64,000 nucleotides of DNA, taken from positions 3,534,001-3,598,000 of the forward strand of contig CATNEN010000037.1 of assembly GCA_950097015.1 (NCBI GenBank). Direction: 5' to 3'. Position numbers and translations under genes: made by a program. The stretch comes from Macrostomum hystrix. Lineage: Eukaryota > Animalia > Platyhelminthes. Positions 9,185 to 62,507 of the stretch are shown here, piece by piece. Positions within the stretch are counted from its first letter, which is position 1. Each line of letters opens with the position of its first letter. The notes below the pieces were generated by a model. It worked only from the letters and a program-made list of their open reading frames with translations. It ran no database searches and had not been told where the DNA came from.

Positions 9185-10282
9185 TGAATGAATTGTGTAG
9201 ATGGGGGTAGAGGGGAGACGAGGGAGAGAGGAAGAGGAAGAATAGGGGAGGTGGGAGAGGAGGGAGACGGAGAGTGGAGAGGCAGAAAGTAGAAAAACGA
9301 TCGGAGAGTTATGAGCAAAGGAGGTAGGTAGAGTCTGTGTGACATTGTTGAGTGCAATATATGTGACCGAGTGAGTAAAAAAGTAGAATAGTGGAGTCTT
9401 CATGAGTCTAGCCGGAGAAAACGGAGAGTGAGAGCAATTAGCAGCCAATATTAAAATTAAAAAAAGGTATATTGGAAGCACAAAATGGAATTAAAAAGGC
9501 AGTTCAGAAGGTCCCACAGAGTATTAGATTGAATTTTTCTTTTACCAGCAAGAATAGATTTTACTCGCAAAAGCAGTTACTCGGGATGCAGTTTTCGGAG
9601 GGCCAGAAAAAATCCTATTCAAAAAAACGGCTGCCGCCGCCCTGCATAGAAGACAATGCTAATGCAATCGGGTCCTCGAGTGATCATCGCCTGGGGTTGG
9701 GAATCGGTATCGTCTATGGACTAAGGGAAGGAAGGCTCGGATGGGAAAGAATCCCACGCGGAGGCAGTTTGTGTGGGGGAGTATTAGTGGGAGAGTAACT
9801 GCCACAACAGATGGCGGCTTCTAGAGGAAAAGCCTTCTGTGCCTCCTTCATATCCTCAAATATAGCGTTGAGAAAAAATGTTGAAGCACTCCTTCTAGCT
9901 TCTATTTTCGTTGGGAATTTGCCTTGGCTTGGGGATGAGAGAAAGTGGTAGGCAGCGGTGTTGTGTGTTTTCTAGAAAGCTGCAGTAATCAACCTAAATA
10001 AGGGTGAGTTACGCACGCTGTCAATGCTTTTTTGTTAATAATTCTCACTCACTCTCGCATCAACTACCCGCTCTGCACTGCAGCAAGCTTATCTTGTTTA
10101 GATCGCTTGAAATAGATTTACTGTGTAATGTAGCTTCACTGAAGCATGCTAAATTACTTTATATTACTCAGCATTCACCAAAGAATGTTTGCTGAACGCA
10201 ATAAGCTCATAAAAGGTACAAATATAAGTTCCCCCACTAGAATATTATGGCATAAAATGGCGTAGCCTGATTAAAAGATACA

Positions 10283-24530: not shown

Positions 24531-24722
24531 TCGTTATTTCAGGATTTAGGCTATAGTGAAAAAGGATTTTAAGCGACTTTGACGAAATAGGGTTTAAACG
24601 AATTGTGATTCAAGATCTTGACACTTGATGATTATCACGCCTTCAAAAATAGCACATTTCGAAGAAACATTGAGGTTTCACTTGGCTCTCAATGTTGTGC
24701 TCTATCCTTGCTCCTTTCGCAG

Positions 24723-26098
24723 GGAAATCAGATGCAGACAGATTTAAGCAGACAGAACAGCACAGTCTGAAAGTCATTCCAATTAAGAACAACTCGCTTT
24801 ACGATATCGGCCTGGTCACTGAGAAGCTCAACAAATTCCCTGTTATAAAAATCCGCCGGGAGGGCAAGTACTATGTGAGCTCGAAGAACGTACTGCACGA
24901 ACCCCACCCCAAGTTCAGGCGGGACAGCAATGGAATCGTGATACCGACTATTAACAAAGAATTTCTAAATCCTATAGAAAGCATTGTCAGCAGGTTCTGC
25001 GAAGACGTATTGTGCATTAGCCGGGCGAAAGAGTTGTCACTGAATTCACAGGGCGAGCGACACCTGATCTGGGTGGGTGCTATGAAGGCCAAGCAGATTA
25101 TCAACCGTCTTACTGGTAATGGCTGCTTTATTGTTAACCGGTTTCCGGGCGATATATTCCTGAAAGACAAGCAAGTGATGGGCGTCACACTGAGGCGGTA
25201 CATGTTGGAGCGCCACAATTATTGTCTGAAAAAGTGTGGCTCACACTTAGATTACGACGGTCCGGAGACTTATCGCATCTGTTCGCATATGGTGGGATCC
25301 ATGCAAACTGACAAGGAAGGCTGCAAAAGCCAAGCGTGTTTCAACTATCGCAAGACACTGTGCAAGCACATGGATATCTTCATACCAGAGGTACAAAGCT
25401 TCTCTTCGTACAATGCGCTGCAGCTATTTTCAAACCGGCTTGATGGTGAATTGAAGGGCCAGTTGTTTGTTTGCAAACCTGCGTACCTCACTAAAGGTAG
25501 GGGCTTTCAATTCTTTCACAGAAGTGAAGAGTTTCAAAAGTTCTACCACATGACCTTGGGCAAGGAAACGTCACGGCACGACTTTCTTGTCCAGCGCATG
25601 ATCGATGAACCATACCTGTTCGATGGGTACAAAGTAGACATCAGAGCATTCTTGCTCATCGTTACGCTGCGCAACCGGCGTGTCGTGGCCTTTTTGAACC
25701 CGGGCTTCTGTCGCATAGCCTCGGTAAAGTACGAGTCTTTCACAGAATCTGAAGACAACAATGGCAACACGGATGCACAGACAATAAATAAAATGCGCCA
25801 GCAAGAAGCCGATGCTCTCGATGCTAAGATGCAGATGCTTGTCTGTTCGTACCAGTCACAGAAGGAGAAGGCCGACAGGGCCATGCGGATTAGCGAGAGC
25901 CACCTGCTCACTGTCAGTGAAGACCGGTCCAAGAAGCTCGAGGAAGTGTTTGGCCCTGATTCTCTGTTGGCTACCATCAAGGATCAGATCACGCACATTG
26001 GTATACGTATAGCTACTGCCATCGAGAATAAGATCTGGGACGCCTACGGATGCTATCAGATTTTCGGAATGGACTTTTCCGTGGATCAGAACGATAAG
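24723..26098 (+). CDS. TTLL10: Main exon of a tubulin-tyrosine-ligase-like (TTL/TTLL ATP-grasp) protein, TTLL10-like
   Basis: Acceptor gctcctttcgcag|gg, donor aag|gtaaga. Motifs NRFPG..KD, VCKP....GRG, VQRMI.EPYLFDGYKVDIR, G..R.AS.KY and YQIFGMDF.VD match the TTL family. Confidence 0.85.
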
Positions 26099-26169
26099 GT
26101 AAGACTTTACAGGTATGATTCACGAGCCGCAACACACCAAATGCAGTGAGCTCTTTCGAATGTCCTTAG

Positions 26170-30497: not shown

Positions 30498-31856
30498 TCA
30501 CACAGAGGTGAGGCGAAGGCTGACCCGACAGTCACAGGGGGTGCATTGTTTGGAACCGCCGGCGGTGCTCCATCGCTGCTCACCGATGGGACTCAGTCGC
30601 CTCAGCGGCTGCAGCTCCTCGGCAGCGCCAACAATTTCGTCGCTGTCATCAAAATTTCCAACGCCAATTTCTAGCGGCGTCGCCGTCCTCGGCGGCTGCG
30701 GCGGCGTCAGCGGCGGAGTCACGGGCAGCGGGCGGCGCTCCGGTCGGAACTGGTACTGCGCCACAGCCTTCCCATTGCTGGCGGGCGCGGCGCAGCAGAC
30801 GAACAGCTTCCGCTGCAGCTCCTGACGGAAGCGACGGCCGAGCACAAAGTAGAAGATCCAGTTCGTGGCGTTGTTGGTGTACATGAGAATGGCGAAAACT
30901 CGCTCGGCGATTTTCAGCGCTGCAGCTCGTCCGTGACCGCCGCGCTGCAGATCGCTGCGTCGCTCCGTGGCGTAGATAAGGTAGAGCTCGTAGGGAAGGG
31001 CGAACAGCAAGAAGGTGGAGTTCATGCCGATCAAGGCGATGGAGATTCGCCGCTGCTGATGGCTCAGCCTGGCTACGTCACTAGGAAAAGTGCGCTTGAA
31101 GCGGTGCAGGCTGTACATGATGCCGGCGCTGCTGACGGCCAGGCAGACGGCCGGCAGGAACACGCGCAGCACCAGAGTGCTGTAGAAATAGTACGGCGAC
31201 TTCCACTTCTGGGCGCAGACGCCGCCGCCTCCGCCGTTCGCGCTGCCGTTGCTGTTGGACTCGTTTGCGCCAAGATTTCTTTCGTAGTACTTGACGGAGC
31301 TGGTGACCGCGGCCACCGCCATGGCCATCGGGATGGTCAGCGTCACCGCCAGGGCGCGCTTTGACGCGGCGTAGTTCAACTGACGTCGGCACGCCAGCGG
31401 CAGGACGGCGCTCAAGCAGCGGGTGAGGCTGATTCCGACCTGGACCCAGCTGGATGCGATCAGGCCGTAGTACTGCAGCATGGTCAGGCCGTAGCACGCT
31501 GGCGCGCTCCAGCTTCTGGGGTCGTAGCTGCCAGTAGCGGCTGACGGAGATAACTCGGCTCTGACAATGGCACGCACAATATTCAAGTACATGATTGGCA
31601 GGCCGACAGACATGACGCACAGGTCAGTGAGGCTGAGGGCAATGAACCATGGCCTGGCCTCCTTCTGGGTGCTGCCGCGGCGCAGCAGGACGGTGACGCA
31701 GACCGCAGTGCCAGCACAGCCGGACACATACAGCAGGGGTACCAGCCAGGCGAACAGGTATTTGTACACGGCGGCGAGTAGTTCAAGAGCAGCCGCTTCG
31801 CTTGCGGCGTCGGCTGTTGCCGAGTGGTCGGTTGCGTTCGGGTTGCTGTTAGGCAT
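30498..31856 (-). CDS. Intronless class A (rhodopsin-like) GPCR, FMRFamide/peptide-receptor-like orphan
   Basis: 452-aa ORF from ATG with 7 hydrophobic segments; LSLTD (TM2), Cys at the top of TM3 and in ECL2, S.W.QVGISLTRC..AV.PL (TM3), FLP (TM5), FALP (TM6), NNATNWIFY...RRFRQEL (TM7/H8). Confidence 0.92.
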   Translation of the reverse strand: MPNSNPNATDHSATADAASEAAALELLAAVYKYLFAWLVPLLYVSGCAGTAVCVTVLLRRGSTQKEARPWFIALSLTDLCVMSVGLPIMYLNIVRAIVRAELSPSAATGSYDPRSWSAPACYGLTMLQYYGLIASSWVQVGISLTRCLSAVLPLACRRQLNYAASKRALAVTLTIPMAMAVAAVTSSVKYYERNLGANESNSNGSANGGGGGVCAQKWKSPYYFYSTLVLRVFLPAVCLAVSSAGIMYSLHRFKRTFPSDVARLSHQQRRISIALIGMNSTFLLFALPYELYLIYATERRSDLQRGGHGRAAALKIAERVFAILMYTNNATNWIFYFVLGRRFRQELQRKLFVCCAAPASNGKAVAQYQFRPERRPLPVTPPLTPPQPPRTATPLEIGVGNFDDSDEIVGAAEELQPLRRLSPIGEQRWSTAGGSKQCTPCDCRVSLRLTSV

Positions 31857-34800: not shown

Positions 34801-35613
34801 TAGCGTTAGAGTAGCGTAGAGTATCGTAGCGTAGCATAGAGTAACTATGCTATAGTAAATTGATAGCTGACATGTAGACAGTACACCCCCTACCCATGGC
34901 CTGTCACCGTGTCTACCGTGTATCCATGCCATGTCATGCATAAATGGTTACAAGATACGCTCGTATCGGATTGATCTAATACGTTAGGAGGTGGTTGGCC
35001 CTATTCGTTCGTTTTTCTAGACTTTTTTCTATAGTTCCCTAAGTGACTTTTCGGCATGTCCCGGAGGGGGCGGACACCAATGGCTTGATTTAATTTGGCT
35101 AGCTAATTCTAGCTAATCAATTCCTTGCACTTTTATTCAGATCTCTCTCTCTGTCTCACGTCGAGCATTTTATAATAAGTAGTCAGAATCTTATAATAAA
35201 TATGGTTAGTAAATAAAAAGTAATATTAAAGATACTATAAACATTAGGTATAATTCCGACTTAGTTTTTTATTAGTCAGCGAAATTCAGCTGCAAAGGAA
35301 TCCAGAAAAGTCCCCCTTACCCGTGTTGGGAGAAAAGTCCCTAGATCACCTGATGCATAGATCTCTGTCTAGCGTAGCCTGCCCAAGCTGAATAAAGTAA
35401 TTAGAGAGAAGGCAGGAACTGAAAGCAATGCCGTTGTTAATAACTTTGCACCAAGCTCAAGCCGAATGAGAAGGTCCTGCAAAGTAGAAAAATTAATCTT
35501 CAGGAAAGTCTGATAAAAATCAAAGAATTCATCCCCAATCTGTCTTCGAATCCTACCAGGGGTTATATGGCATCTCCTCAGTCATTTGCGTTCTTTGTTT
35601 TAGTCTCTTTAGT

Positions 35614-37341
35614 CTCATCTTCCCTGGTCCTATCTTCCCTGGTCCTATCTTCCCTTGTCCTCATCTTCCCTTGTCCTCATCTTCCCTTGTCCTCATCTTC
35701 CCTAGTCCTATCTTCACTGGTCCTCATCTTCACTGGTCCTCATCTTCCTTGGTCCTCATCTTCCCTTGTCCTCATCTTCCCTTGTCCTCATCTTCCCTTG
35801 TCCTCATCTTCCCTGGTCCTATCTTCACTGGTCCTCATCTTCACTGGTCCTATCTTCACTGGTCCTCATCTTCCCTTGTCCTCATCTTCTCTTGTCCTCA
35901 TCTTCCTTGGTCCTCATCTTCCCTGGTCCTATCTTCACTGGTCCTCATCTTCACTGGTCCTATCTTCCCTGGTCCTCATCTTCCCTTGTCCTCATCTTCC
36001 TTGGTCCTCATCTTCCCTTGTCCTCATCTTCCCTTGTCCTCATCTTCTCTTGTCCTCATCTTCCCTTGTCCTCATCTTCCCTTGTCCTCATCTTCCCTTG
36101 TCCTCATCTTCTCTTGTCCTCATCTTCCCTTGTCCTCATCTTCCCTTGTCCTCATCTTCCCTGGTCCTATCTTCCCTGGTCCTCATCTTCCCTGGTCCCA
36201 TCTTCCCTGGTCCTCATCTTCCCTGGTCCTATCTTCCCTGGTCCCATCTTCCCTTGTCCTCATCTTCCCTGGTCCTATCTTCCCTGGTCCTCATCTTCCC
36301 TGGTCCTATCTTCCCTGGTCCCATCTTCCCTGGTCCTATCTTCCCTGGTCCTATCTTCCCTGGCCCTATCTTCCCTGGTCCTATCTTCCCTGGTCCTATC
36401 TTCCCTGGTCCTATCTTCCGTAGTCCTATCTTCCGTAGTCCTATCTTCCCTGGTCCTATCTTCCCTGGTCCTATCTTGCCTGGTCCTATCTTCCCTGGTC
36501 CTATCTTCCCTGGTCCTATCTTCCCTGGTCCTATCTTCCGTAGTCCTATCTTCCCTGGTCCTATCTTCCGTAGTCCTATCTTCCCTGGTCCTATCTTCCC
36601 TGGTCCTATCTTCCCTGGTCCTATCTTCCCTGGTCCTATCTTCCCTGGTCCTATCTTCCCTGGTCCTATCTTCCGTAGTCCTATCTTCCCTGGTCCTATC
36701 TTCCCTGGTCCTATCTTCCCTGGTCCTATCTTCCCTGGTCCTATCTTCCCTGGTCCTATCTTCCCTGGTCCTATCTTCCCTGGTCCTATCTTCCCTGGTC
36801 CTATCTTCCCTGGTCCTATCTTCCCTGGTCCTATCTTCCCTGGTCCTATCTTCCCTGGTCCTATCTTCCCTGGTCCTATCTTCCCTGGTCCTATCTTCCG
36901 TAGTCCTATCTTCCCTGGTCCTATCTTCCCTGGTCCTATCTTCCCTGGTCCTATCTTCCCTGGCCCTATCTTCCCTGGTCCTATCTTCCCTGGTCCTATC
37001 TTCCCTGGTCCTATCTTCCCTGGTCCTATCTTCCCTGGTCCTATCTTCCCTGGTCCTATCTTCCCTGGTCCTATCTTCCCTGGTCCTATCTTCCCTGGTC
37101 CTATCTTCCCTGGTCCTATCTTCCCTGGTCCTATCTTCCGTAGTCCTATCTTCCCTGGTCCTATCTTCCCTGGTCCTATCTTCCCTGGTCCTACCTTCCC
37201 TGGTCCTATCTTCCCTGGTCCTATCTTCCGTAGTCCTATCTTCCCTGGCCCTATCTTCCCTGGTCCTATCTTCCCTGGTCCTATCTTCCCTGGTCCTATC
37301 TTCCCTGGTCCTATCTTGCCTGGTCCTATCTTGCCTGGTCC
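35614..37341. repeat. 15/16-bp pyrimidine-rich minisatellite
   Basis: Mixed TCCTCATCTTCCCTTG / TCCTATCTTCCCTGG on the left, pure 15-mer on the right. Confidence 0.97.
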
Positions 37342-38076
37342 ATTCATATATCTTATCATGGCTTCCTTTTCAGCTTCAGTGCTTTCTTCATTAACTGTTG
37401 GGTGTTAGAGGAATGCTAGAATAAATATCTGCTTAATCTGACCAAACGGCATCGTAGAATGCAGCCAACCAATTTTCTAAGAAATCAATGAATTAAAAGC
37501 TAAAAGCAAAAGTCCATGCTTAGGCCAGGCGGTCTGCAGTGATGGACAGCGTGGCGCAGGTGCACAAACAAACACGCGAGTGGTTTCTGGGAGGCCGGCC
37601 AACAAAAAGCATGGCCAATACAGGCAAAAGTCATCCCAGTGCTGGTACAGCTCTTATTGGCCTTTCTATAGTTCCTTCTTGGGAGAGGAAATTGCTTCAA
37701 GTCGCCCCCCAATCGACCGGCTCCCTCAAGGACGACCCCGCCTGATAATAATATCCCCGCTCGGCTGTTGACAGCGGATACGTATTGGAGCATCTATTGG
37801 ATAACCGAGTTTGTTGTCAGGGGAGAAATTCAATTTAGTCTCCTGCAGCCCCATATGTATCATTTAGGTAAAGCAAATTGGCAAGAAACTAAAGTCAGCC
37901 TTCATAAATTTCAGTCTTCAGTATTTGTTTGTGGCTGCCAACCAGGATTGCGAAAAGCTGCTTTGAACTTTTAGCATTCATTTTAATAGAATACCGTTTT
38001 AATTTAACTTAAGATATTTGCTGAAAAAAATTGAGCGTAAAAGTACAAAGACAAAATATTTCACGACAAATATTCA

Positions 38077-38880
38077 GGTCCTCATCTTCCCTAGTCCTCA
38101 TCTTCCCTGGTCATCATCTTCTCTGGTCCTCATCTTCACTGGTCCTCATCTTCCCTAGTCCTCATCTTCTCTTGTCCTCATCTTCCCTTGTCCTCATCTT
38201 CCCTGGTCCTATCTTCCCTGGTCCTATCTTCCCTGGTCCTCATCTTCCCTTGTCCTCATCTTCTCTGGTCCTCATCTTCTCTGGTCCTATCTTCCCTGGT
38301 CCTCATCTTCTCTGGTCCTCATCTTCCCTGGTAGTCATCTTCCCTAGTCCTCATCTTCTCTTGTCCTCATCTTCCTTGGTCTTCATCTTCCCTTGTCCTC
38401 ATCTTCCCTGGTCCTATCTTCCCTGGTCCTATCTTCCCTGGTCCTCATCTTCCCTAGTCCTCATCTTCTCTTGTCCTCATCTTCCCTGGTCCTATCTTCC
38501 CTGGTCCTCATCTTCCCTTGTCCTCATCTTCCCTTGTCCTCATCTTCCCTGGTCCTCATCTTCCCTTGTCCTCATCTTCCCTTGTCCTCATCTTCCCTTG
38601 TCCTCATCTTCCCTTGTCCTCATCTTCCCTTGTCCTCATCTTCCCTTGTCCTCATCTTCCCTGGTCCTCATCTTCCCTTGTCCTCATCTTCCCTTGTCCT
38701 CATCTTCCCTTGTCCTCATCTTCCCTGGTCCTCATCTTCCCTGGTCCTATCTTCCCTAGTCCTCATCTTCACTGGTCCTCATCGTCCCTAGTCCTCATCT
38801 TCCCTTGTCCTCATCTTCCCTGATCCTCATCTTCCCTTGTCCTCATCTTCTCTGGTCCTCATCTTCCCTGGTCCTCATCC
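38077..38880. repeat. Second array of the same 15/16-bp family
   Basis: Unit TCCTCATCTTCCCT(T/G)G. Confidence 0.95.
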
Positions 38881-39297
38881 ATCTTCCTTACTCTACATCG
38901 AGGCAGTCGGAATGTAAGAAAATAGTACTTCATGGCAATATTCAGATTGAATCTAGCAGTCGTGCGAGCCCAAGCAATCGCAGTCCTCTCACCTGAGCTG
39001 CAGCCATCGAAGACTCCTCACTGCAAACAGAATAGTTGCAGGAAACTCAAGCCAACAGACTCATCGCTGCTCATCCGTCACTGCTAATCCTTCTTCTACT
39101 TCCTCAGTCCACAGCCAACCCTTTGCCAGCTCTGTGCATTCACTCCAGCCTAGATTTTTTCCCAGTGAGTAAGGGACCAATCGATTGCTCAGAATAAAAA
39201 TATTTCCTGACATATTTTGTGAAAGAATGATATTTTGTGACACAACATTGAGTCTAGATTGTTTGCTGTAATTTTGTAGATTTTTCTAGACATACTC

Positions 39298-39646
39298 GTC
39301 ATTCTTGTCATTCTTGTCATTCTTGTCATTCTTGTCATTCATTTCATTCTTGTCATTCTTGTCATTCTTGTCATTCTTGTCATTCTTGTCATTCTTGTCA
39401 TCCTTGCCATTCTTGTCATTCTTGTCATTCATTTCATTCTTGTCATTCTTGTCATTCTTGTCATTCTTGTCATTCTTGTCATTCTTGTCATTCTTGTCAT
39501 TCATGTCATTCTTGCCATTCTTGTCATTCTTGTCATTCTTGTCATTCTTGTCATCCTTGCCATTCTTGTCATTCTTGTCATTCTTGTCATTCTTGTCATT
39601 CATTTCATTCTTGTCATTCTTGTCATTCTTGTCATTCTTGCCATCA
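39298..39646. repeat. 9-bp tandem repeat
   Basis: Unit CATTCTTGT. Confidence 0.95.
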
Positions 39647-41339
39647 TTGTAAATTTTGTCAATTTCGAGATGTTTTTTTAAATTGACGCTACTATTAGTA
39701 GAGTAGTGAAGCTTTGAACGTATATGAGAAATAATTACCCTTTTAACATAGTGAAGAATTATATTTATGCAGCACTATAAATCAATGATTATTGCCAGAG
39801 CTGTTTAACCAAAGGCGGCATCGAAAGCCAGACAACTCAGATACAAAGCAGAGAAAATGACCAAAGAAATTTTCTTTAATGTGAAAGCAAAACAGAAGAC
39901 AAATTTACGCCAAATTTAACAAACGAATTTCACAAAGGCGAAATCACGTGGCGGGGCAAGCTAGGCGTGCATTTGGTAAGAAAGCTTTGAATAAAATATT
40001 AAATGAGGAATACACAAGGAGCTGGACACCGAAGGTGTTGCCTCTCTTCCCCATGCTTTGCTGTGTTTTTGGGACACAAATAGAAATCGTGTTGCACACA
40101 GGGAAGAACGATGATGAGGCTTAGTTGAGAACGTTAGCAATTCATAGTCGGGGCCCAGTTGAGCATAGTTGAGCACACGCTAGGATGAGTTTGGGCCATC
40201 TCTAGCCCACCCCGTCTGTCTCATGCTCCTTGGTCTGTTCTCAGCAACATCCCTCGGTGTTCAAGCGTGAACTAGGGCAAGGTGTCACCCGATAGCTGAA
40301 GCCAATTTTGGAGACCATTCCGAATGCTGAGAGCTATCATTGCCAGCACTGCCGAGTCTGAAGCTGATAATTACCCTTCTGTGGTTTGTTTATCAACAAA
40401 CAAACTAAAAATGTCCTTAGTAGATTTTTTCCTGACTAGATTTCGAGTTCAACTGCAAACAATGGAAACTTGTTTGTTATCGAAAGAAAATTAAACACAC
40501 AAAATTACTCGTAAAACGAAATCATTTTTCCAGGAGTTCAATGAAATTATAAGAGACCTACCCAAACCTCAACCCTAGCTGGTGTTGGTAGAAATTCTAA
40601 AGTTGGGTACTGAAGTACTCATAACATATGGGTGAGCTGGGTGACCAAACCAAAGCAAGGCGAAAGCATTCTATTTATATATATAGCCGATTCGATTAAA
40701 AAGTTTATACAAATCGTTCTGTTAGTCTATCAAAGTGTCCCAGCTGACACCTCCAATTGTTCATTCTCCGTCCGGTAATGTTCTTCCAAATAAGAACAGC
40801 AACATTAGCATTTGGAGAAGCAGCAGCAGCAGCAGCAGCAGCAGCAGTTATACAAGTTCCTGCAATTGAATTACCTCAACATGAATGCTACTCCCAGTAT
40901 TCCCAGACGATCTCGCAAAGTCGTATTTCGGGACTGTCGGAATTAATCTAATTTGAGATAGCCATTTTTTCTTATCTGTCGCAGATTTTAATACGCTGAG
41001 ATAAGACCCGAAGGCGACATGAGCAGAAAGCAAAGTTGCGCAACTCAGAGACTGGTTCAAAGTATTTCCCATTTTCCTGGAAAAAGTGCACGCCTGGTTG
41101 ATCATCTTTATTAACCCGGCATTCTAAGAAACACAAACTGCTTATATTGCTATTGAGAAGCAGGAATAGCAGTTTGATGGTTTGTGACAGCCAATCATTG
41201 ATGGAGACACGAATGGACAGAGAGAGAGCTTGACCCGTGTGTTATATGGGCTGGTTTAGGCAAACAGAGCTAAGAAATCGCCTCTAGGAGGGTAGCATCA
41301 GTTCAGCACAGGCCGATACAAACAATCCAAGAAAAAGAA

Positions 41340-41645
41340 ATGAAATTAGTAAGTTCCGACACTGTCTCTGTTGGGGCATTCTCACAAACTGCTCACTGGT
41401 GTCTAACTCTACTACTGGCTGCTAGTCTAGCCTTTCTGACATCGCGTCACATTGTGATGGACGCTACACTTCAAGCTTTAGCTGATTCGCTAGGAGCTGT
41501 CAACACCACTTCGAAGTTGGGCATTAAAGTTGGCGAATATTCTTCGGTTGAGGAAAAACGGGACCTGCGGCTGTTGCGACGTCTGCGGCGTAGGAGCCCG
41601 ACTGGTGACGACTCGCGCTGGCTTGAAGCCGTCAGCAGGTTCAGG
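41340..41645 (+). CDS. Short membrane-anchored collagen, exon 1 (signal anchor, amphipathic linker, furin site RRLRRR)
   Basis: ATG 41340, hydrophobic HWCLTLLLAASLAFLTS, polybasic LRRLRRRS, donor agg|gtgagg, phase 0. Confidence 0.7.
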
Positions 41646-41682
41646 GTGAGGCTGTAAGATAAATGCATCTCAGTCTCTCTGA

Positions 41683-42770
41683 TGCTTTACTGCTCACTGT
41701 CTCTGAGGCTTTCTACTGTTCACAGTCGGCTTTCCACTGTTCTCAGTCTCTGAGGCTCTCTACTGTTCACTGTCTCTGAGGCTCTCTACTGTTCACTGTC
41801 TCTGAGGCTCTCTACTGCTCACTGTCTCTGAGGCTTTCTACTGTTCACAGTCGGCTTTCCACTGTTCTCAGTCTCTGAGGCTCTCTACTGTTCACTGTCT
41901 CTGATGCTTTACTGCTCACTGTCTCTGAGGCTCTCTACTGTTCACAGTCGGCTTTCCACTGTTCACAGTCTCTGAGGCTCTCTACTGTTCACAGTCGGCT
42001 TTCCACTGTTCTCAGTCTATGAGGCTCTCTACTGTTCACAGTCGGCTTTCCACTGTTCTCAGTCTCTGAGGCTTTCTACTGTTCACAGTCGGCTTTCCAC
42101 TGTTCTCAGTCTCTGAGGCTCTCTACTGTTCACTGTCTCTGAGGCTCTCTACTGTTCACTGTCTCTGAGGCTCTCTACTGCTCACTGTCTCTGAGGCTTT
42201 CTACTGTTCACAGTCGGCTTTCCACTGTTCTCAGTCTCTGAGGCTCTCTACTGTTCACTGTCTCTGATGCTTTACTGCTCACTGTCTCTGAGGCTCTCTA
42301 CTGTTCACAGTCGGCTTTCCACTGTTCACAGTCTCTGAGGCTCTCTACTGTTCACAGTCGGCTTTCCACTGTTCTCAGTCTCTGAGGCTTTCTACTGTTC
42401 ACAGTCGGCTTTCCACTGTTCTCAGTCTCTGAGGCTCTCTACTGTTCACTGTCTCTGAGGCTTTCTACTGTTCACAGTCGGCTTTCCACTGTTCACAGTC
42501 TCTGAGGCTCTCTACTGTTCACAGTCGGCTTTCCACTGTTCTCAGTCTCTGAGGCTCTCTACTGTTCACTGTCTCTGAGGCTTTCTACTGTTCACAGTCG
42601 GCTTTCCACTGTTCTCAGTCTCTGAGGCTCTCTACTGTTCACTGTCTCTGAGGCTCTCTACTGCTCACTGTCTCTGAGGCTTTCTACTGTTCACAGTCGG
42701 CTTTCCACTGTTCACAGTCTCTGAGGCTCTCTACTGCTCACAGCCTCTGAGGCTCTCTTAGGCTCTCTAC
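41683..42770. repeat. Composite 26-bp + 21-bp (47-bp) minisatellite in collagen intron 1
   Basis: CTCTGAGGCTCTCTACTGTTCACWGT and CGGCTTTCCACTGTTCWCAGT subunits. Confidence 0.93.
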
Positions 42771-43224
42771 CCCTGAGCTCTTTATATGTAAACTGAAGCT
42801 TAAAATGTTCGAGAAATTATAAGCCAATGCAGAAAATCCGAAAGATTTTTGTCGCAAAAAATTATGTTATTTAAACTTCGAGATAGGAATTCGCAATAAT
42901 CTAGTGCAAATTTTGAAAACTTTTGGGATCTAAGTGTTACGCAATCCGTTTTAGGAATCGTACGCTTTAGTAGTCAGTTCTTGGCAGCTCCGATAGACTG
43001 CTGCGGCAGTTTTGGTCACTCCTGATTGATTGATTCATTCATAAAACATTTTTCAAGCCTAAATGCTATAAAATCTTGGATTTGGATATGGATAGGTTTA
43101 GACTTCAGGTACATAATTATCATCAAAGATAAGCAGCATGGACTCATAGATAATTATCTTTATAAGATAAGCGGGGCAGGCAGATAATTATCACGGTAGA
43201 TATGCGAACAGGTTGATAATTACA

Positions 43225-43862
43225 CTGATAGATAAGCAGGCAGGTAGATAATTAACACGATAGATATGCGGGCAGGTAGACAATTGCACTGATAGATAAG
43301 CGGGCAGGTAGACAATTGCACTGATAGATAAGCGGGCAGGTAGACAATTGCACTGATAGATAAGCGGGCAGGTAGACAATTGCACTGATAGATAAGCGGG
43401 CAGGTAGACAATTGCACTGATAGATAAGCGGGCAGGTAGACAATTGCACTGATAGATAAGCGGGCAGGTAGACAATTGCACTGATAGATAAGCGGGCAGG
43501 TAGACAATTGCACTGATAGATAAGCGGGCAGGTAGACAATTGCACTGATAGATAAGCGGGCAGGTAGACAATTGCACTGATAGATAAGCGGGCAGGTAGA
43601 CAATTGCACTGATAGATAAGCGGGCAGGTAGACAATTGCACTGATAGATAAGCGGGCAGGTAGACAATTGCACTGATAGATAAGCGGGCAGGTAGACAAT
43701 TGCACTGATAGATAAGCAGGCAGGTAGACAATTGCACTGATAGATAAGCGGGCAGGTAGACAATTGCACTGATAGATAAGCGGGCAGGTAGACAATTGCA
43801 CTGATAGATAAGCAGGCAGGTAGACAATTGCACTGATAGATAAGCGGGCAGGTAGACAATTA
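43225..43862. repeat. 32-bp near-perfect minisatellite, about 19 copies
   Basis: Unit GATAGATAAGCGGGCAGGTAGACAATTGCACT. Confidence 0.97.
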
Positions 43863-44792
43863 TCTTTAAATGTAAGCAAGAAGGTTAAACTTTTTCTATC
43901 GGACATGCAAAGCGCCAAATACATCGTAATTATCCTGAATATGCAGGCGGGTAGATGATTTCAATGGTAGATAAGCGGTAGAACATGGTAGAACACGTAA
44001 TTATCTTGATAGACAAGCAGACAGATCTAGATAACCAGTAAATTAGATTAGAATGCAGGCTCTGTAGGTAGATCAGTAGACAGTCCCCTGCCACCATTTA
44101 GCAAAGCAAACCTCACCTGAAAGCGGGTTAATTTACTTCTTCAACAAATTTTCAACTTGCCTGCTAAAAAATGCCCACCTGGTCGCATCTTCTGAGCCAG
44201 TAAGTGCGTCAAGATTGATTTGGGCGAAGTGCAGCTGGCGGAGCATTCTTAGAATGGGAAGGAAGAACACTTTTAGGCCGAGGAAAAAGAAGCCTAACCA
44301 AATCCATTGTGCTGCAAGCTAATATACAAAGCTTGGCCAGGTGTTGGAGAGCTAATTAAGTATGCGAAGAATAAAGTAGACAGTAAATAGTCATTCCAGA
44401 GGCAAAACTTGCGACTAGAGTGTCACCGGCTGAGGAAGGAAGACCACTTGACAGCTGGGGTGGGTGGCAAAAAAACACACACAACTCGACCAAGCCTATT
44501 CCTCAGTCAATCTGGGCGGGCCGTGGTTGAATGGCCGCTTGGTGCTGGATAATGTGGCAACGGGTACTCTAGAAGCACCATTCAACAGTGCTCATTTTGC
44601 AGCTCTCGCGGCTCTCTTCAGCCTCTTGACTTCTTGACTTGGCTTCTCAAATTCTCCGGCGATGATTGCATGAAAGGATCTGCTGAATATATCTGGGATT
44701 TAGGGAGAATAGGGAGCATACACGGCTGCTATTGCTGGCTAGCTGGGAGAGGTTGCAAAGAAAAATATTACTTTTGCCCTGAACCGTTTCAG

Positions 44793-44877
44793 ATTGCCGA
44801 TCTCAAATCTGTTTGCGTAGCAGTTTCGGAGGCCTGCGCCGCACAGCATCGGGCTCGCAATGCCAGGAATTCCAAGC
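44793..44877 (+). CDS. Short collagen, exon 2 (Cys pair)
   Basis: Acceptor ccgtttcag|att, donor c|gtgagc; IADLKSVCVAVSEACAAQHRARNARNSK. Phase 0 to 1 bridges exons 1 and 3. Confidence 0.6.
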
Positions 44878-45044
44878 GTGAGCTCATTCGGAAAGCGTTT
44901 CTTGGTTTGAGGACTTTAGTTCAAAAACTGCTGCTTTCACATTTACAAAGACGACTATCAAACTATCAAAGCCTTTCTTACCCCTTCAACCCTAGAAAAT
45001 TCTACCTAGCCCTAGAACTATATCTAGACAGTTTAAACTTGCAG

Positions 45045-46090
45045 CATCTCAACCCATCATCCCATCAACCCTACAACCTACCATCAACCCTTCATCCCAT
45101 CAACCCTTCAACCCATCAACCCTACAACCTACCATCAACCCATCATCCCATCAACCCTACAACCTACCATCAACCCATCATCCCATCAACCCTTCAACCC
45201 ATCAACCCTACAACCTACCATCAACCCATCATCCCATCAACCCTTCAACCCATCAACCCTACAACCTACCATCAACCCTTCAACCCATCAACCCTACAAC
45301 CTACCATCAACCCTTCATCCCATCAACCCTACAACCTACCATCAACCCTTCATCCCATCAACCCTACAACCCTTCAACCCATCAACCCTACAACCTACCA
45401 TCAACCCTTCAACCCATCAACCCTACAACCTACCATCAACCCTTCATCCCATCAACCCTACAACCCTTCAACCCATCAACCCATCAACCCATCAACCCAT
45501 CAACCCTTCAACCCATCAACCCTTCAACCTATCAATCCATCAATCCTTCAACCCATCAACCCTTCAATCCATCAACCTTTCATCCCATCAACCCATCAAC
45601 CCTTCAACCCACCAAGCTTTCAACCCTTCAACCTATCAACCCATCAACACTTCAACCTATCAACCCTTCATCCCATCAACCCTTCAACCTATCAACCCAT
45701 CAACACTTCAACCTATCAACCCATCAACACTTCAACCTATCAACCCTTCATCCCATCAACCCTTCAACCTATCAACCCTTCAACATATCAACCCTTCAAC
45801 CTATCAACCCATCAACCCTGCAATCCATCAATCCTTCAACCCATCAACCCTTCAATCCATCAACCCTACAATCCATCAACCCTTCAATCAACCCTTCATC
45901 CCATAAACCCATCAACCCTTCAACCCACCAAGCTTTCAACCCTTCAACCCTTCAAGCCTTCAACCCTTCAAGCCTACAAGTCTAAAAAAATTGACCCTTT
46001 AATTGTTCAATCATTCCATCCTTCAACCCTTCAACCCTTCAACCCTTCAAAGCTTGAACCCTTGAACAATTGAACCCTTCAACCCTTCAA
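45045..46090. repeat. Degenerate 8-bp C/A-rich repeat (collagen intron 2)
   Basis: CCATCAAC / CCTTCAAC units. Confidence 0.9.
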
Positions 46091-46180
46091 CCAGAAAGCA
46101 TAAACTTAAGCCTAACACCAGAAAATATGACGAAAGCAGCCTTCAAAACAAAAACTACTACATTTTATCTTCCGACTCAG

Positions 46181-46345
46181 GCACCACTGAGCAGTCAGTC
46201 GGCTTCGGCGGACCCAAAGGCGACAAAGGCGACAAAGGCGACATGGGCGAACGCGGCCTGCTGGGGCCAATCGGACTGCCCGGCAAGATGGGACCGCCCG
46301 GTGTGCAGGGCCCGAAGGGCGAACCCGGAGACTCCTTCCGACCAA
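46181..46345 (+). CDS. Short collagen, exon 3 (14 Gly-X-Y triplets)
   Basis: Acceptor ttttatcttccgactcag|gc, donor a|gtgaga; [42 protein letters not shown]; 165 nt, phase 1-1. Confidence 0.9.
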
Positions 46346-46454
46346 GTGAGAAAACCGAGTAGCTGCTTAGCTTCAGTGCCGGAAACTCTCAGGCATTCGA
46401 ACCACTAACCCATCGATCAACCACCAAAGTATTTAAGTCCTAAAGCCTTTAAGG

Positions 46455-46965
46455 CCTAAACCCTTCAACCCTTCAGCCATTCAACCATTTAACCACTCAA
46501 CCCTTCAACCCTTCAACCCCTTCAACCCCTTCAACCCCTTCAACCCCTTCAGCCCTTAAACCCCTTCAACCCTTCAACCCAAAACCCTTCAACCCCTAAA
46601 CCTTCAACCCTTAACCCTTTAAACCTACCCCTTCAACCCCTAAACCCTTTAACGCTAAACCCTTCAACCCCGTCAACCCTTCAACCCAGTCAACCCCTTC
46701 AACCCCTTCAGCCCTTGAACCCCTTGAACCCTTCAACCCCTTCTATCCTTCAACCCTTTAACCCCTTCAACCCCTAAACGTTCAACCCTAAACCCTTTAA
46801 CCCTAACCCTTCAACCCGTAAGCACTTCAACGCTAAACCCTTCAACCCCTAAACCCTTCAACCCATTCAACCCCTTGACTCCTCAACCCCTAAACCCTTC
46901 GACCTACACACTTCAACCCCTAAACCATTCAACCCCTAAAACCATACGATCCGTAAAACCTTCAA
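46455..46965. repeat. Degenerate 8-9-bp repeat of the same family (collagen intron 3)
   Basis: CCCTTCAAC units. Confidence 0.88.
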
Positions 46966-47087
46966 CCCCTCCATCCCATAACCTTCAAAAGCAAAGCCTC
47001 AATACTCCAATCCTTAAATCTGAGAGCCCTCCTTGGTTTAGCGCCGCAGTTAATTCATTCAAAGCTTGCAACCCGAAACAATCACAG

Positions 47088-47213
47088 GCAGCATGAGGTG
47101 CCGAGTTGACTACCAGGGCGAAACAGCGTGCAGCTACACAGATTCCAATAACAATTTGATCAACATGCGAAGCAGGGGCTCCAAGCAATGGCAACCTGAA
47201 CCCTGGTGCCCCT
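47088..47213 (+). CDS. Short collagen, exon 4 (non-collagenous Cys-containing interruption)
   Basis: cacag|gc ... t|gtgagc; 126 nt, phase 1-1; SSMRCRVDYQGETACSY...QPEPWCP, giving CPC directly before the next triplets. Confidence 0.65.
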
Positions 47214-47239
47214 GTGAGCTTCTGACTGAAAATTGCTTG

Positions 47240-47488
47240 TTCTCTTAGGTTGGGTTTAGTGTGGATTGGGGTTGGGGTGGATTGGGGTAGGAGTGGATTG
47301 GGGTTGGAGTTGATTGGGGTAGGAGTGGATTGGGGTTGGAGTTGATTGGGGTTGGAGTGGATTGGGGTTAGAGTGGATTGGGTTTGGAGTGGATTTGGGT
47401 TGGAGCGGATTTGGTTTGGAGTGGATTGGGGTTGGAGTGGATTTGGGTTGGAGCGGATTTGGTTTGGAGTGGATTGGGGTTGAAGTGG
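47240..47488. repeat. 16-bp G/T-rich repeat (collagen intron 4)
   Basis: Unit TGGATTGGGGTTGGAG. Confidence 0.92.
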
Positions 47489-47548
47489 ACATGTAAGGGC
47501 ATGGAAAAGTGTTATTTGTTAAAATAAGTCACCTCAAAATAACTTCAG

Positions 47549-47638
47549 GCCAGAAAGGCGATCCGGGTGAGCGCGGTTTGGTGGGCCTGCGTGGCGAAAA
47601 AGGTGAGCCCGGAGTGTGCAGCAGGCCCTGCTTTACAG
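47549..47638 (+). CDS. Short collagen, exon 5 (7 Gly-X-Y triplets)
   Basis: cttcag|gc ... g|gtgagc; QKGDPGERGLVGLRGEKGEPGVCSRPCFT; 90 nt, phase 1-1. Confidence 0.88.
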
Positions 47639-47734
47639 GTGAGCAATTATCTGCTTTTGATTAGGTTCAGTTCGGGAATTAGCGAGCAATATTGTGATAT
47701 CCCTAAAGTGGTGTATCTATGGTCCAGTATCAAG

Positions 47735-48262
47735 GATCCCTAGTGACAATGATCCCTGGTGTCTATGAATCCGTAGTGACAATGATCCCTAGTGTCTATG
47801 ATCCCTAGCGACAATGATCCCTACTGTCTATGATCCCTACTATCTATGATCCCTAGCGACAATGATCCCTAGCGACAATGATCCCTAGCGACAATGATCC
47901 CTTGCGACAATGATCCCTACTGTCTATGATCCCTAGTGTCTATGATCCCTATTGTCTATGATCCCTACTGTCTATGATCCCTACTGTCTATGATCCCTAC
48001 TATCTATGATCCCTACTGTCTATGATCCCTACAATCTATGATCCCTACTATCTATGATCCCTACTATCTATGATCCCTACTATCTATGATCCCTACTATC
48101 TATGATCCCTACTATCTATGATCCCTACTATCTATGATCCCTACTATCTATGATCCCTACTGTCTATGATCCCTACTATCTATGATCCCTAGCGACAATG
48201 ATCCCTACTGTCTATGATCCCTAGTGTCTATGAACCCTAGTGTCTATGATCCCTATTGTCTA
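47735..48262. repeat. 16-bp minisatellite (collagen intron 5)
   Basis: Unit CTATGATCCCTACTRT, with a CAATGATCCCTAGCGA variant. Confidence 0.93.
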
Positions 48263-48347
48263 TGAGCTCTAAAGTTTATGAGCTTAAACATATTTCGGAG
48301 AAAATATTTCTGTCAGAAAAAAACTTTTCTGCTTTTATTTCCCTCAG

Positions 48348-48469
48348 AACCTTCGACCAGCAAAAGCAATGGATCAGCACGAATAGCACCCAGCAATGTC
48401 TGCCTGTTGCTGCAAATTGCACTGCTGGCACTGGGAGGCATTTGTGGCCGTTTCTTAGCTTTTGCCTGA
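48348..48469 (+). CDS. Short collagen, terminal exon 6 (GPI-signal-like hydrophobic tail)
   Basis: Strong acceptor cttttatttccctcag|aa, phase 1; EPSTSKSNGSARIAPSNVCLLLQIALLALGGICGRFLAFA*. Confidence 0.72.
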
Positions 48470-48947
48470 CAATCTCGCGATTGTTAAAGTTAGCCGTTGA
48501 AACAAGCAAGTTTGCAAGGAACGTCTAATATTTTTCCGACAATTTTATACATTTTAAACATTCTTACTACTTAATCTACTTAGGAAGTAGCACAGTAGAA
48601 TTTGATGCACATTAATTTTTTATAGCATATTCGCTTAATGCTCATTAAATATTTTGTCATTTTTCATTCATTTTTTCTAATTTTAGATGACATGGAATAT
48701 CATATATTCCATCTAACTAACGCGTTAATCGATAACTAATAATCCTATATAACTAGAGCACAATACATGCATATAAACACAATAATACGTATGGAACATA
48801 AAAACTGGGTAATTGAAGATCAAATAATCTGTTTGATAACTTAAACGATCATTTCACATACTATTTGTGTATTTAAGCTTGAATGGATTTGGTTGGCTTA
48901 AAAAATGAAGTCGAACCGAAATATATTTTATTTCTTTCGAATTGAAT

Positions 48948-50401: not shown

Positions 50402-51041
50402 CTAATCCGCCAGTCCACCATCGTCCAGTTCTTCAGCTTCTCCATCAGACATCGCCGGAGGCCCAGCCTCCTCCGCGGCCGCCGCAGTCGCTGATGCCCC
50501 CGCAGCGGCTGTCAGGACGCCCGGTTCATCGCCGCTGGTCGCCTGACCGTGGCGCCGGCAGCCGAGCAACCTTCCAGCCAGATAGTAGGCAAACTCCAGC
50601 ATCTCGACAGACGTAATGACAGTCAGGCCGCCCCATAGCGAGAAGGAGCCGCCAATCTGCGAGATCAACGCCTCCAGCGTGATCTGCAGCTTCTCCTTGG
50701 TGACAGTTCGGGACAGGTCGGGCCGAAACACGCGCAGCCTGAGAAAATTATCCCTAATTAGATTGCCCTCCTCCGACTGCAACAGGTCGGCGGCGGCAGC
50801 AACATTGCCACTGCGAATGAGACTCTCCGAGCGGCTGTAGACGCTGAACTTGCCAGCCAGCATGGAGTTGTTTCTCACTCGCAGCCGGTAGAAGTCCAGC
50901 TCGTTTGTCTTCGGCGGCCACAGGGACTGGTAGGCGGTGGTTTTGAAGCCCAACGAATAGCAGGAGGCCGGACAGGTCGAGTCTGACTCGCTTGACATCA
51001 GATTGCGCGGGTCCAGCTCCTGCTTCGAGGCGCAGTCGTAG
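50402..51041 (-). CDS. DEG/ENaC channel subunit, exon 2 (end of thumb, TM2, C-tail)
   Basis: Acceptor cccacgcag|c, phase 2 match; CPASC, SLWP, LISQIGGSFSLWGGLTVITSVEMLEF; TAG at 50402-50404. Total protein 596 aa. Confidence 0.93.
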
Positions 51042-51050
51042 CTGCGTGGG

Positions 51051-52095
51051 AGAATGGATTGCTAGCCTGACCTCAAAGTGAATGGATTGCTAGTCTGACC
51101 TCAAAGTGAATGGATTGCTAGCCTGACCCCACAGTGAATGGATTCCTAGCCTGACCTCACAGTGAATGGATTGCTAGCCTGACCTCACAGTGAATGGATT
51201 GCTAGCCTGACCTCGAAGTCAATGCATTGCTATCCTGACCTCACGGTGAATAGTTTGCTAGCCTGACCTCAAAGTGAATGGATTGCTAGCCTGACCTCAC
51301 GGTGAATGGTTTGCTAGCCTGACCTCACGGTGAATGGATTGCTAGCCTGACCCCACAGTGAATGGATTCCTAGTCTGACCTCACGGTGAATGGATTGCTA
51401 GCCTGACCCCACAGTGAATGGATTCCTAGCCTGACCTCACAGTGAATGGATTGCTAGCCTGACCTCAAAGTGAATGGATTGCTAGCCTGACCTCACAGTG
51501 AATGGATTGCTAGCCTGACCTGGCAGTGAATGGATTGCTAGCCTGACCTCAAAGTCAATGCATTGCTAGCCTGACCTCACGGTAAATGGTTTGCTAGCCT
51601 GACCTCACGGTGAATGGTTTGCTAGCCTGACCTCACGGTGAATGGATTGCTAGCCTGACCTCACAGTGAAAGGATTGCTAGCCTGACCTCACGGTGAATG
51701 GTTTACTAGCCTGACCTCACGGTGAATGGTTTGCTAGCCTGACCTCACGGTGAATGGTTTACTAGCCTGACCTCACAGTGAATCGATTGCTAGCCTGACC
51801 TCACAGTGAAAGGATTGCTAGCCTGACGTCACAGTGAATGGATTGCTAGCCTGACCCCACAGTGAATGGATTCCTAGCCTGATCCCACAGTGAATGGATT
51901 GCTAGCCTGACCTCACAGTGAATGGATTGCTAGCCTGACCTCACAGTGAATGGATTGCTAGCCTGACCTCACAGTGAAAGGATTGCTAGCCTGACCTCAC
52001 AGTGAATGGATTGCTAGCCTGACCCCACAGTGAATGGATTGCTAGCCTGACCTCACAGTGAATGGATTGCTAGCCTGACCTCACAGTGAAAGGAT
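51051..52095. repeat. 28-bp minisatellite in the DEG/ENaC intron, about 37 copies
   Basis: Unit TGAATGGATTGCTAGCCTGACCTCACAG. Confidence 0.97.
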
Positions 52096-52747
52096 TAGAT
52101 TAAATGTGTTTTTGTTCGCTATGAAAGATGCCACAGGCCATGTTCCTTGTTAGCCTGGTCAAATATGCCCTTTTATCTCCCATCTTAGCAAAGCCGATGC
52201 CAGCTCGCTAGACTCAGCTCGAAGAGGTCTCAAATTTCTTCAATTTGCCTAAATCCTCCCAGTTCTTGTCGTATTCCTATTTTTTATGTTTTTTTATCCC
52301 AGCATCTCAGCAGTAGATCCTCAAGCTGTACAGTCTGACTCCTAGTGCAGCAAGTGGCTTTGGCTAACTAGTCAAACCAGATCTCTTGCGTGTCTTGCTT
52401 GAATTTCGCTGTCAGATAAAATAATGACCCTTTCCGCTCTTCGCAATATTTAAAAACGAAGCAATTCGTTTAGGGAATTTTTGCGAATTTTAATGGCTCT
52501 GGATAAACTGTTGCTAGCTAATTGCCCTAATGTGATCCGCGAGTACTACAGGCAGTTATGCTCAGTTCATTGAACTCAGTCCGAGTTCATTGCGAGTTCT
52601 ACTGATAATCCGGAGGCCCTGATAATCTGGAGTCCCTGATAATCCAAGATGCCCTGATAAGCCGATACCCTGATAATATTTTAACAGTATTTTTTAAGCA
52701 AATTTCGCAATTTTCCGAGTCTAAAAGCAATAGAAATTCGAACTCAC

Positions 52748-53898
52748 CTGGTGAAGAAAGCGTCGAAATCGAGCGAGTTGTTGCCCACCTTGCCGCAGAA
52801 TGGAACCTGGCTGAGCTCGGCCGTCAGTGGAAAGTCCGGATCAACGCATTTGCAGTGACGCCTAATTGAGTTCTGCACCTCCAGCTGACGGCAGGTGAGA
52901 CTGTCGTACGCGAACCTCCTACTCCGACCCCCCCTGACATCGCCGCCTCCGCCGCCTCCGTGGCCAATGTACAGGTCGATGTGCTGCCTGTCCGTGCAGT
53001 TCTCCTTCGGCGATTGTTTGTACTTTTCCACCGAGCGCGCTTCAACCAGCTCGATGACGCTCTTGGTGCCCGGTAGGACGTGAATGCCCAGCTGGCTGAT
53101 GCGCGGGTAGGTGCCGGCCGGGTGGACCAGAACGTGCGCGCCGATGCTGTCGTCCAAGTCGAAAAGCGTCGATGTGTCGTTGCATAGGTTGGCCTGCTGA
53201 CAGCTGAACATCTGCTCAGTATCCAGGTAGAGATCCATCTCTAGCGCGTGGGTGGTGTTGGCAATGTCTGGCGCCGGTGTCAGCATGAAGCAGGTGAAGA
53301 ACTGCGGGTTCGGTATCAGCAGGACGTCGCCGCTCAGATTGCAGCCGCGCTGCTGCATCTTGGAGTCAGTGACGTGGGTGAAATTGCAGGTGCCGTTTAG
53401 TACAAAGTCGTGAAAGGCTAGGCCGATCCGACGCACCGTGTTGACGCCCCAGTTCTGGTACAGGAAGGACTTGTCGGACAACGCCTTGAAGCTGCTGGAA
53501 TAGTTAGCGTAGCCCTTGAGCTGGGCCAGCATGTGCAGCAGGCGGATGTCCGTGACGTTTTTGCCAGTCCTGCTGCCGAATCGGCTAATCATGTCCGTGG
53601 AGAAGGGCTGCAGGTTGCAGACGGTCACGGATGGGAATGGAACCCTGTCTGAGTAGTGCTCAGTTGTGACCTCGAGCACGGTCTGGTAGAGCCGGTAGGT
53701 GTTGACCAGGCGCACGGTGAAGAACAGGCTGACGCCAAGGAAGCCGGACACGGACACCAGCCAGACCAGCTTCCAGCAGGCGCTGCGGCAGCGCAGGATG
53801 CGGGGCACTCCGCGCACCGAGGACAGCAGGCAGAAGCGGATTATCTCGTCAGATACTGACGTCGGGTGACTCGAGCGCTGCATCAGATCGCGACCCAT
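52748..53898 (-). CDS. DEG/ENaC (ASIC/FaNaC superfamily) channel subunit, exon 1
   Basis: ATG 53898 with an in-frame stop upstream; pre-TM1 SSVRGVPRI, TM1 KLVWLVSVSGFLGVSLFF, FPSVTVCNLQP, CF.L, G..V.VH....YP, Cys-rich thumb; donor ag|gtgagt, phase 2. Confidence 0.93.
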
Positions 53899-62028: not shown

Positions 62029-62301
<273 letters not shown>

Positions 62302-62507
62302 TAGCATTCTAACAATGAATGGCATGGTATATTATATAAATTGGCTCACCTAACTCACTTCCCCTCTTATCTATTCTGACGCCAAACTCCCAAACTCCTC
62401 CTTATCGATACACATATCGCACTACCCCAACCCAATAAATACAGCCACCAATCAATCCCATTCAATCACACTCCTTATCAATATCGAACAGCTACCTCAC
62501 TCCCTAA

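Follow-up and report, generated by a model that had tools for sequence, protein, structure and literature searches.

The stretch of the Macrostomum hystrix genome analyzed here (GenBank assembly GCA_950097015.1, contig CATNEN010000037.1, positions 3,534,001 to 3,598,000; 64,000 nucleotides in all, hereafter the window) contains, at 41340–48469 of its + strand, a six-exon gene model for a short collagen of 297 residues. The exons fit together consistently, and the sequence they encode holds two blocks of Gly-X-Y triplets, an ordered pattern of cysteines, a polybasic site, and a C-terminal tail. Taking the whole chain of inference together, our favored interpretation, to which we give slightly less than even weight, is that this is a real gene for a lineage-restricted, cell-surface collagen trimer that would be processed by a convertase and held by a lipid at its C-terminus. 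A layout with a membrane-entry segment and a cutting site at the front and a lipid-anchor-type signal at the back appears to have been described for no animal collagen. The initial annotation, made from the bare sequence, had known of no such class, and a full-text literature search for phrases denoting collagens anchored by glycosylphosphatidylinositol (GPI) likewise returned nothing relevant, its only yield being two unrelated articles from the 1980s.

Exon structure and coding support

Joining the six exons gives a frame of 894 nt, corresponding to 297 residues and a stop codon, in which each acceptor is CAG, each donor is GTGAG, and the phases are 0, 1, 1, 1, and 1; the exon number, phase consistency, and protein length given in the initial annotation are thereby reproduced. 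Exon 1 (41340–41645, 306 nt, residues 1–102) carries the start codon, the hydrophobic segment, the polybasic site, and the start of a putative helix opening with W-L-x3-S-R; it has an N-glycosylation sequon (NTT) at residue 55, ends at the donor GTGAGG at 41646, and is preceded by an in-frame stop at 41271, 69 nt 5′ of the ATG. Exon 2 (44793–44877, 85 nt) encodes residues 103–130 and the first base of codon 131, including Cys110, Cys117, the K130-R131 pair, and the remainder of the putative helix. The next three exons all have phase 1-1: exon 3 (46181–46345, 165 nt) contains the first collagen block, COL1 (nt 46201–46335, residues 138–182), exon 4 (47088–47213, 126 nt) a linker of non-collagen sequence that includes Cys190, Cys200, and Cys226 together with the first base of codon 228, also for Cys, and exon 5 (47549–47638, 90 nt) the second block, COL2 (nt 47557–47619, residues 231–251), ending in a C251-x3-C255 knot. 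Exon 6 (48348–48469, 122 nt) encodes a Ser/Thr-rich stalk, candidate residues for lipid attachment (omega residues), a spacer, and the hydrophobic tail, and closes with the stop codon at 48467–48469. An ATTAAA read directly from the sequence at 48644–48649 (+ strand), 175 nt 3′ of the stop, is a possible polyadenylation signal.

Coding potential was scored with a codon table built from the neighboring genes, and the whole model was compared with random 894-nt windows. The model frame scores best in five of the six exons, exon 1 included, and among the random windows the model as a whole ranks at about the 99th percentile; in exon 4 the model frame reaches 0.06, versus −0.56 and −0.68 in the other two. 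Within the 12.9 kb 5′ of exon 2, exon 1 is the sole candidate that starts with ATG, is hydrophobic, and ends in phase 0 at a GTRAG donor. At the other end, the acceptor at 48348 has a pyrimidine tract of 18 out of 20 and is the best of the phase-1 acceptors yielding at least 25 residues between exon 5 and 50400, and the GC content, 0.51 in exon 6, drops to 0.29 immediately past the stop codon. The collagen gene and a neighboring amiloride-sensitive sodium channel (ASC, of the ASC/DEG-ENaC type) gene share a splice style in which the donor is GTGAG, the acceptor is CAG, and the intron is filled with minisatellites. We consider it highly probable that the collagen gene itself is real.

The annotated ending, without an olfactomedin or immunoglobulin (Ig) exon, holds up as well. 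The ASC gene lies on the − strand, converges on the collagen gene, and ends at ~50402, and the two are separated by 1.9 kb of AT-rich, repeat-filled DNA. Among + strand open segments of at least 35 residues between the collagen stop and the ASC gene, neither olfactomedin nor any other domain gave a Pfam match near any cut-off, and the reading frames of the alternative phase-1 last exons up to 50400 gave no Pfam match. An olfactomedin or other globular last exon was rejected on these grounds; with the ASC gene converging and no domain match in the intervening 1.9 kb, there is no place for a downstream olfactomedin or Ig exon. In the upstream DNA and the unique parts of the introns, no additional domain exons were recognizable in translations inspected by eye, with no Pfam run.

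It is nevertheless conceivable, if unlikely, that the collagen exons are real and that one or both end exons have been wrongly attached, in which case the gene would yield a short, secreted protein of collagen-like type and the double-ended membrane signals would be a modeling artifact. It is in exons 1 and 6 that codon scores are weakest and third-position GC contents lowest (GC3; 0.48 and 0.46, respectively, versus 0.77 in the neighboring genes), read-through of the exon 5 donor meets a stop after eight codons, AG sites between the 41271 stop and the ATG could accept an upstream or trans-spliced exon, and no RNA run was found for the locus with a 7.7-kb, intron-rich query. Against this, exon 1 alone supplies the ER-entry (endoplasmic reticulum) signal that a collagen needs, no acceptor within 2.7 kb is better than that at 48348, whose frame ends in a coherent signal, and the sharp change in composition falls at the stop codon of exon 6, not at the exon 5 donor.

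Two in-frame variants of the model are possible. Skipping of exon 4 would keep the frame, because exons 3–5 are all phase 1-1, and retention of intron 5, with its stop eight codons beyond exon 5, would give an unanchored form. In addition, intron 1 contains a 30-nt ATG-started frame at 44172–44205 that ends at a phase-0 GTAAGT donor; it could join exon 2 to give a form without the ER-entry signal, but is probably due to chance.

Collagen blocks, termini, and predicted maturation

COL1 comprises 15 uninterrupted Gly-X-Y triplets (residues 138–182) and COL2 seven (residues 231–251). The annotated count of seven stands for COL2, whereas the 14 given for COL1 is obtained only if a GFG triplet is left out. 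On the + strand of the window, these are the sole non-repeat runs of at least four triplets, except for a four-triplet chance run at 9236. The Pfam Collagen model (PF01391) matches exon 3 with 34.1 bits, above its cut-off of 27.2, and exon 5 with 20.5 bits, below it; scanning all exons at E ≤ 1 brought up no family other than Collagen. COL1 contains three K-G-D pairs and one K-G-E pair, and such charge pairs stabilize proline-poor triple helices.

The two blocks share a stretch of the form G-D-(M/P)-G-E-R-G-L-(L/V)-G (46237–46269 and 47557–47589), with eight of 11 residues identical. Its third codon base differs in six of the eight conserved codons, and since these codons mostly differ synonymously, the likeness of the two blocks is at the protein level, which we take as a hint of constraint on the protein. 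G-x-x-G-E-R is the shape of integrin-binding collagen motifs.

The cysteines are placed in an orderly manner around these blocks. COL2 is bracketed by two knots, CPC at 226–228 and C-x3-C at 251–255, and the linker between COL1 and COL2 is 48 residues long and has four cysteines. Upstream, the motif W94-L-x3-S-R-x9-C110-x6-C117 straddles the exon 1/2 junction; the stretch 94–120 is predicted to be helical at its start, and one heptad register would place I103, L106, C110, V113, and C117 at core positions. This stretch is accordingly a short and weak candidate for a trimerization helix, which would carry two rings of interchain disulfides. The joined model thus contains the hydrophobic N-terminal segment, the RRLRRR site, the tryptophan-cysteine motif, and the cysteine brackets that the initial annotation listed.

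The hydrophobic core at the N-terminus, WCLTLLLAASLAFL (residues 20–33, nt 41397–41438, + strand), is preceded by at most 19 residues and reads by rule as the ER-entry signal that GPI-anchored proteins carry at their N-terminus, in the form of either a signal peptide or a type II signal anchor. Its mean Kyte–Doolittle hydropathy is 2.22 over the 14 residues and 1.25–1.63 over 19-residue windows. The hydrophobic segment of the initial annotation is therefore present, whereas its status as a signal anchor is not established: the core is no longer than 14 residues, and A-S-L-A|F conforms to the −3/−1 rule of signal peptidase, with a possible cut after A31. Judged from these features, a signal peptide that has a long n-region and is removed by cleavage seems about as likely as a signal anchor. 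In a single-sequence AlphaFold2 (AF2) model of exon 1 (mean predicted local distance difference test score, pLDDT, of 66), helices span residues 12–56, 70–85, and 91–101, and the first of these slightly favors a stalked anchor.

The polybasic site RRLRRR (residues 80–85, nt 41577–41594, + strand) contains R-L-R-R, a furin-type R-X-[KR]-R site, and lies 52 residues ahead of COL1, while the dibasic K130-R131 lies six residues ahead of it. Given the strong R-X-R-R at 81–84, everything N-terminal of Ser86 should detach in the secretory pathway. A neuropeptide precursor was rejected as an identity for the protein: the dibasic sites and the C-x6-C loop are all that speak for it, and the collagen blocks speak against it.

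GPI signals consist of small residues at the omega and omega+2 positions, a polar spacer of 5–10 residues, and a terminal hydrophobic stretch that lacks a hydrophilic tail. The C-terminus of the model reads, as annotated, S-K-S-N-G-S-A, R-I-A-P-S-N, 23 residues (V275–A297, nt 48398–48466), and stop. S264, N265, and G266 (nt 48365–48373) are omega candidates with G, S, or A at omega+2 and a spacer of 6–8 residues, and the final 23 residues have a mean Kyte–Doolittle value of 2.1, including one Q and one R, and no hydrophilic end. In a rule-of-thumb check, the tail has all these parts of a C-terminal GPI signal, and a classical three-part attachment signal is a fair reading of it.

One residue in particular weighs against this reading. 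Arg292, six residues from the end, lies within the tail, which may therefore be a type I span of 17 residues followed by a stub of five. The model could thus be right and its C-terminal stretch a true membrane span, making the protein a type I collagen or, if neither end is removed, a tetherin-like double-anchored one; we regard this as improbable. The apolar run V275–G291 followed by Arg292 does resemble a stop-transfer sequence, and the low-confidence AF2 helix 12–56, which contains the N-terminal hydrophobic segment, resembles a stalked anchor. However, the five apolar residues that separate Arg292 from the stop do not make up a normal cytosolic tail, and the cluster of small residues and the Pro-containing spacer lie at the distance expected of a GPI omega site. 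The double-anchored form in particular is at odds with the strong polybasic site, which argues for removal of the N-terminal part, and it falls if the signal peptide is cleaved, whereas a type I topology would depart from the membrane collagens described in PMC7848082, all of which are type II.

We infer splicing, the mode of ER entry, cleavage, GPI addition, trimerization, and any function in adhesion or signaling from the primary structure, and the favored reading, a processed and lipid-anchored trimer, would combine them as follows. The hydrophobic N-terminal segment, acting as a signal peptide that is cleaved off or as a type II anchor that is only temporary, would direct ER entry, and the C-terminal 30-odd residues would act as a GPI signal and be exchanged for a lipid anchor at about S264–G266. 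Three chains would then associate, aided by the membrane tether beside the C251/C255 knot and by the helix with the heptad-spaced Cys110 and Cys117, and the trimer would fold two short triple helices of 15 and seven triplets on either side of the 48-residue, four-cysteine linker. A furin-type convertase would cut after RRLRRR, and perhaps after KR131, with loss of the N-terminal pro-region or anchor. The mature product would have ~180 residues per chain and form a collagen rod held by its C-terminus on the outer leaflet, from which a GPI-specific phospholipase could free it.

Searches for relatives and comparison with known collagens

Relatives of the protein were sought exon by exon. These searches weigh against the favored reading, as do the low GC3 of exons 1 and 6 and the shortness and low proline content of the collagen blocks (of 44 X/Y positions, nine are Pro). 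With HMMER, 1.84 billion representative proteins yielded no relative of exon 1; the single match is a repeat protein aligned via SSFSQT-type repeats and was rejected as spurious. Exon 1 was also blank in a word index (candidates of 56–178 residues), as was exon 2 within the open 479-residue reference 44634–46070 (candidates of 263–838 residues). The ESM Atlas gave nothing for exons 1 and 4, and neither did the PDB for exon 1 or a metagenome scan. Finally, no RNA run matched the locus 41200–48900 in a single 7.7-kb query, which is weak evidence because most of that query is intron and the exon words are diluted.

How much the blanks mean can be gauged from the neighboring GPCR, a Pfam-confirmed protein of 452 residues that itself had no match at E ≤ 1e-10 in the word-indexed collection; exact look-ups found neither its open reading frame (ORF) nor that of exon 1 on record. 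It seems, then, that no close relatives of this genome are in the collections, and the missing matches say little for novelty and just as little against the gene. They bear on the view that what is seen is a gene copy that is not expressed or is in decay, or in part a chance frame, with no function. The failure to find a homologue or an RNA run and the minisatellite-rich DNA all around speak for that view, but it is very unlikely: the 894-nt frame is intact over six pieces with canonical signals throughout, the 22 Gly-X-Y triplets are uninterrupted and the cysteines orderly, and the blank searches count for little when a confirmed neighbor is equally blank.

Among known proteins, the MACITs (collagens XIII, XXIII, and XXV and Caenorhabditis elegans COL-99) and the colmedins are the closest in likely biology. 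Like the protein described here, MACITs possess a hydrophobic segment at the N-terminus and, ahead of the first collagen domain, a site of the furin type; a juxtamembrane helix aids their folding, their ectodomain is shed, and they are cut where KR131 lies in our model, six residues before COL1 (PMC7848082). However, MACITs carry three to ten COL domains in chains several times as long, and they possess both a true cytosolic domain and a C-terminal sequence that is conserved. Our protein, in contrast, totals 22 triplets and ends in a hydrophobic, GPI-like C-terminus. No homology to MACITs was found, either for exon 1 among the 1.84 billion representatives or as a Pfam match in exons 2 and 4–6.

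Colmedins (gliomedin, UNC-122, and COF-2) are type II collagen-like membrane proteins that have either one short collagen block or two and are shed by convertases (PMC7848082, PMC4206993). They are defined by an extracellular olfactomedin domain, which is present neither in the model nor in the 1.9 kb before the ASC gene, and our protein is therefore not a colmedin. The spacing of residues 94–117 is the same as in the cysteine motif that, according to the initial annotation, precedes the collagen region of invertebrate colmedins; this putative likeness serves as a lead only.

In overall layout, the nematode cuticle collagens are closest. They too have ~300 residues, and they combine an N-terminal membrane segment or signal peptide with an RxxR furin site, two unequal collagen blocks, and flanking cysteine knots (PMC7852208). 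In contrast to our protein, their short and long blocks come in the reverse order and they have no hydrophobic C-terminal tail; moreover, flatworms have no cuticle. Membership in this family was rejected when exons 1 and 2 gave no match to Col_cuticle_N (PF01484) at E ≤ 1.

Ectodysplasin A (EDA) and the class A scavenger receptors are type II membrane proteins with a short collagen stalk, and a furin site is also present in EDA (PMC7848082). Unlike our protein, in which no globular domain exists, these proteins terminate in TNF or SRCR/C-terminal globular domains. A Gly-X-Y region joined to a C-terminal GPI-type attachment site was reportedly described by Wang and St Leger in 2006 for MCL1 of the fungus Metarhizium, which is, to our knowledge, the only collagen-plus-GPI pairing that can be named. 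MCL1 is a fungal cell-wall protein with the role of a collagen-like coat; its sequence context is unrelated, and it lacks a furin pro-region and cysteine knots.

The membrane collagens and collagen-like proteins covered by the reviews are type II, N-terminally anchored, and shed by convertases, and they act at synapses, nodes of Ranvier, and hemidesmosomes and in axon guidance (PMC7848082, PMC4206993). It is possible, if doubtful, that the present protein is the first animal collagen to be held at the surface by its C-terminus, through GPI or a stub type I span, with its N-terminal anchor or pro-region cut off by a convertase. If so, its polarity would be opposite to that of the described membrane collagens, all type II; folding could zip from C to N from a nucleus at the membrane, and a phospholipase could release the product. 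With a lipid anchor, each trimer would have three lipid tails, with possible targeting to rafts, and would display a triple helix on a cell in a novel manner while also serving as a natural minimal model of membrane-nucleated triple-helix folding. The value of such a finding is limited for now in that the gene looks restricted to one flatworm lineage and both anchors are predicted.

Repeats and neighboring genes

Besides the collagen gene, Pfam identified four coding regions in the window: a tubulin-tyrosine-ligase family ORF at 24692–26149 (+ strand); the single-exon, 452-residue rhodopsin-type GPCR at 30498–31856 (− strand), matched to 7tm_1 with only 42 bits; the two-exon ASC gene at 50402–53898 (− strand); and a MORN-repeat exon at 62029–62304 (+ strand). 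The two ASC exons are confirmed by one Pfam model that spans the intron, with profile positions 1–336 on one side and 360–455 on the other.

Much of the remaining DNA around the collagen gene is repetitive. Minisatellites at 35567–39650, 5′ of the gene, produce long stop-free frames that are clearly non-coding (PGPIF and SSLVL repeats, for example), and ORF lists for the window are inflated as a result. Intron 1 holds two arrays, one at 41676–42758 with ~45 copies of a 26-nt unit and one at 43165–43861 with 22 copies of a 32-nt unit. The unit of the first contains CTGAGGCT, which is one base different from the real donor GTGAGGCT. Long arrays in introns 2 and 3 (45049–46092 and 46459–46935) have the 8-nt unit TCAACCC(T/A) and are rich in C on the sense strand, whereas the array in intron 4 (47250–47489) consists of the G-rich 16-nt unit TTGGGGTTGGAGTGGA, so that composition is strongly strand-asymmetric within one gene. 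The single visible intron of the ASC gene (51048–52745, − strand) is likewise filled by a minisatellite, with a unit of ~29 nt that contains the donor-like copy GTGAGGTCAGG.

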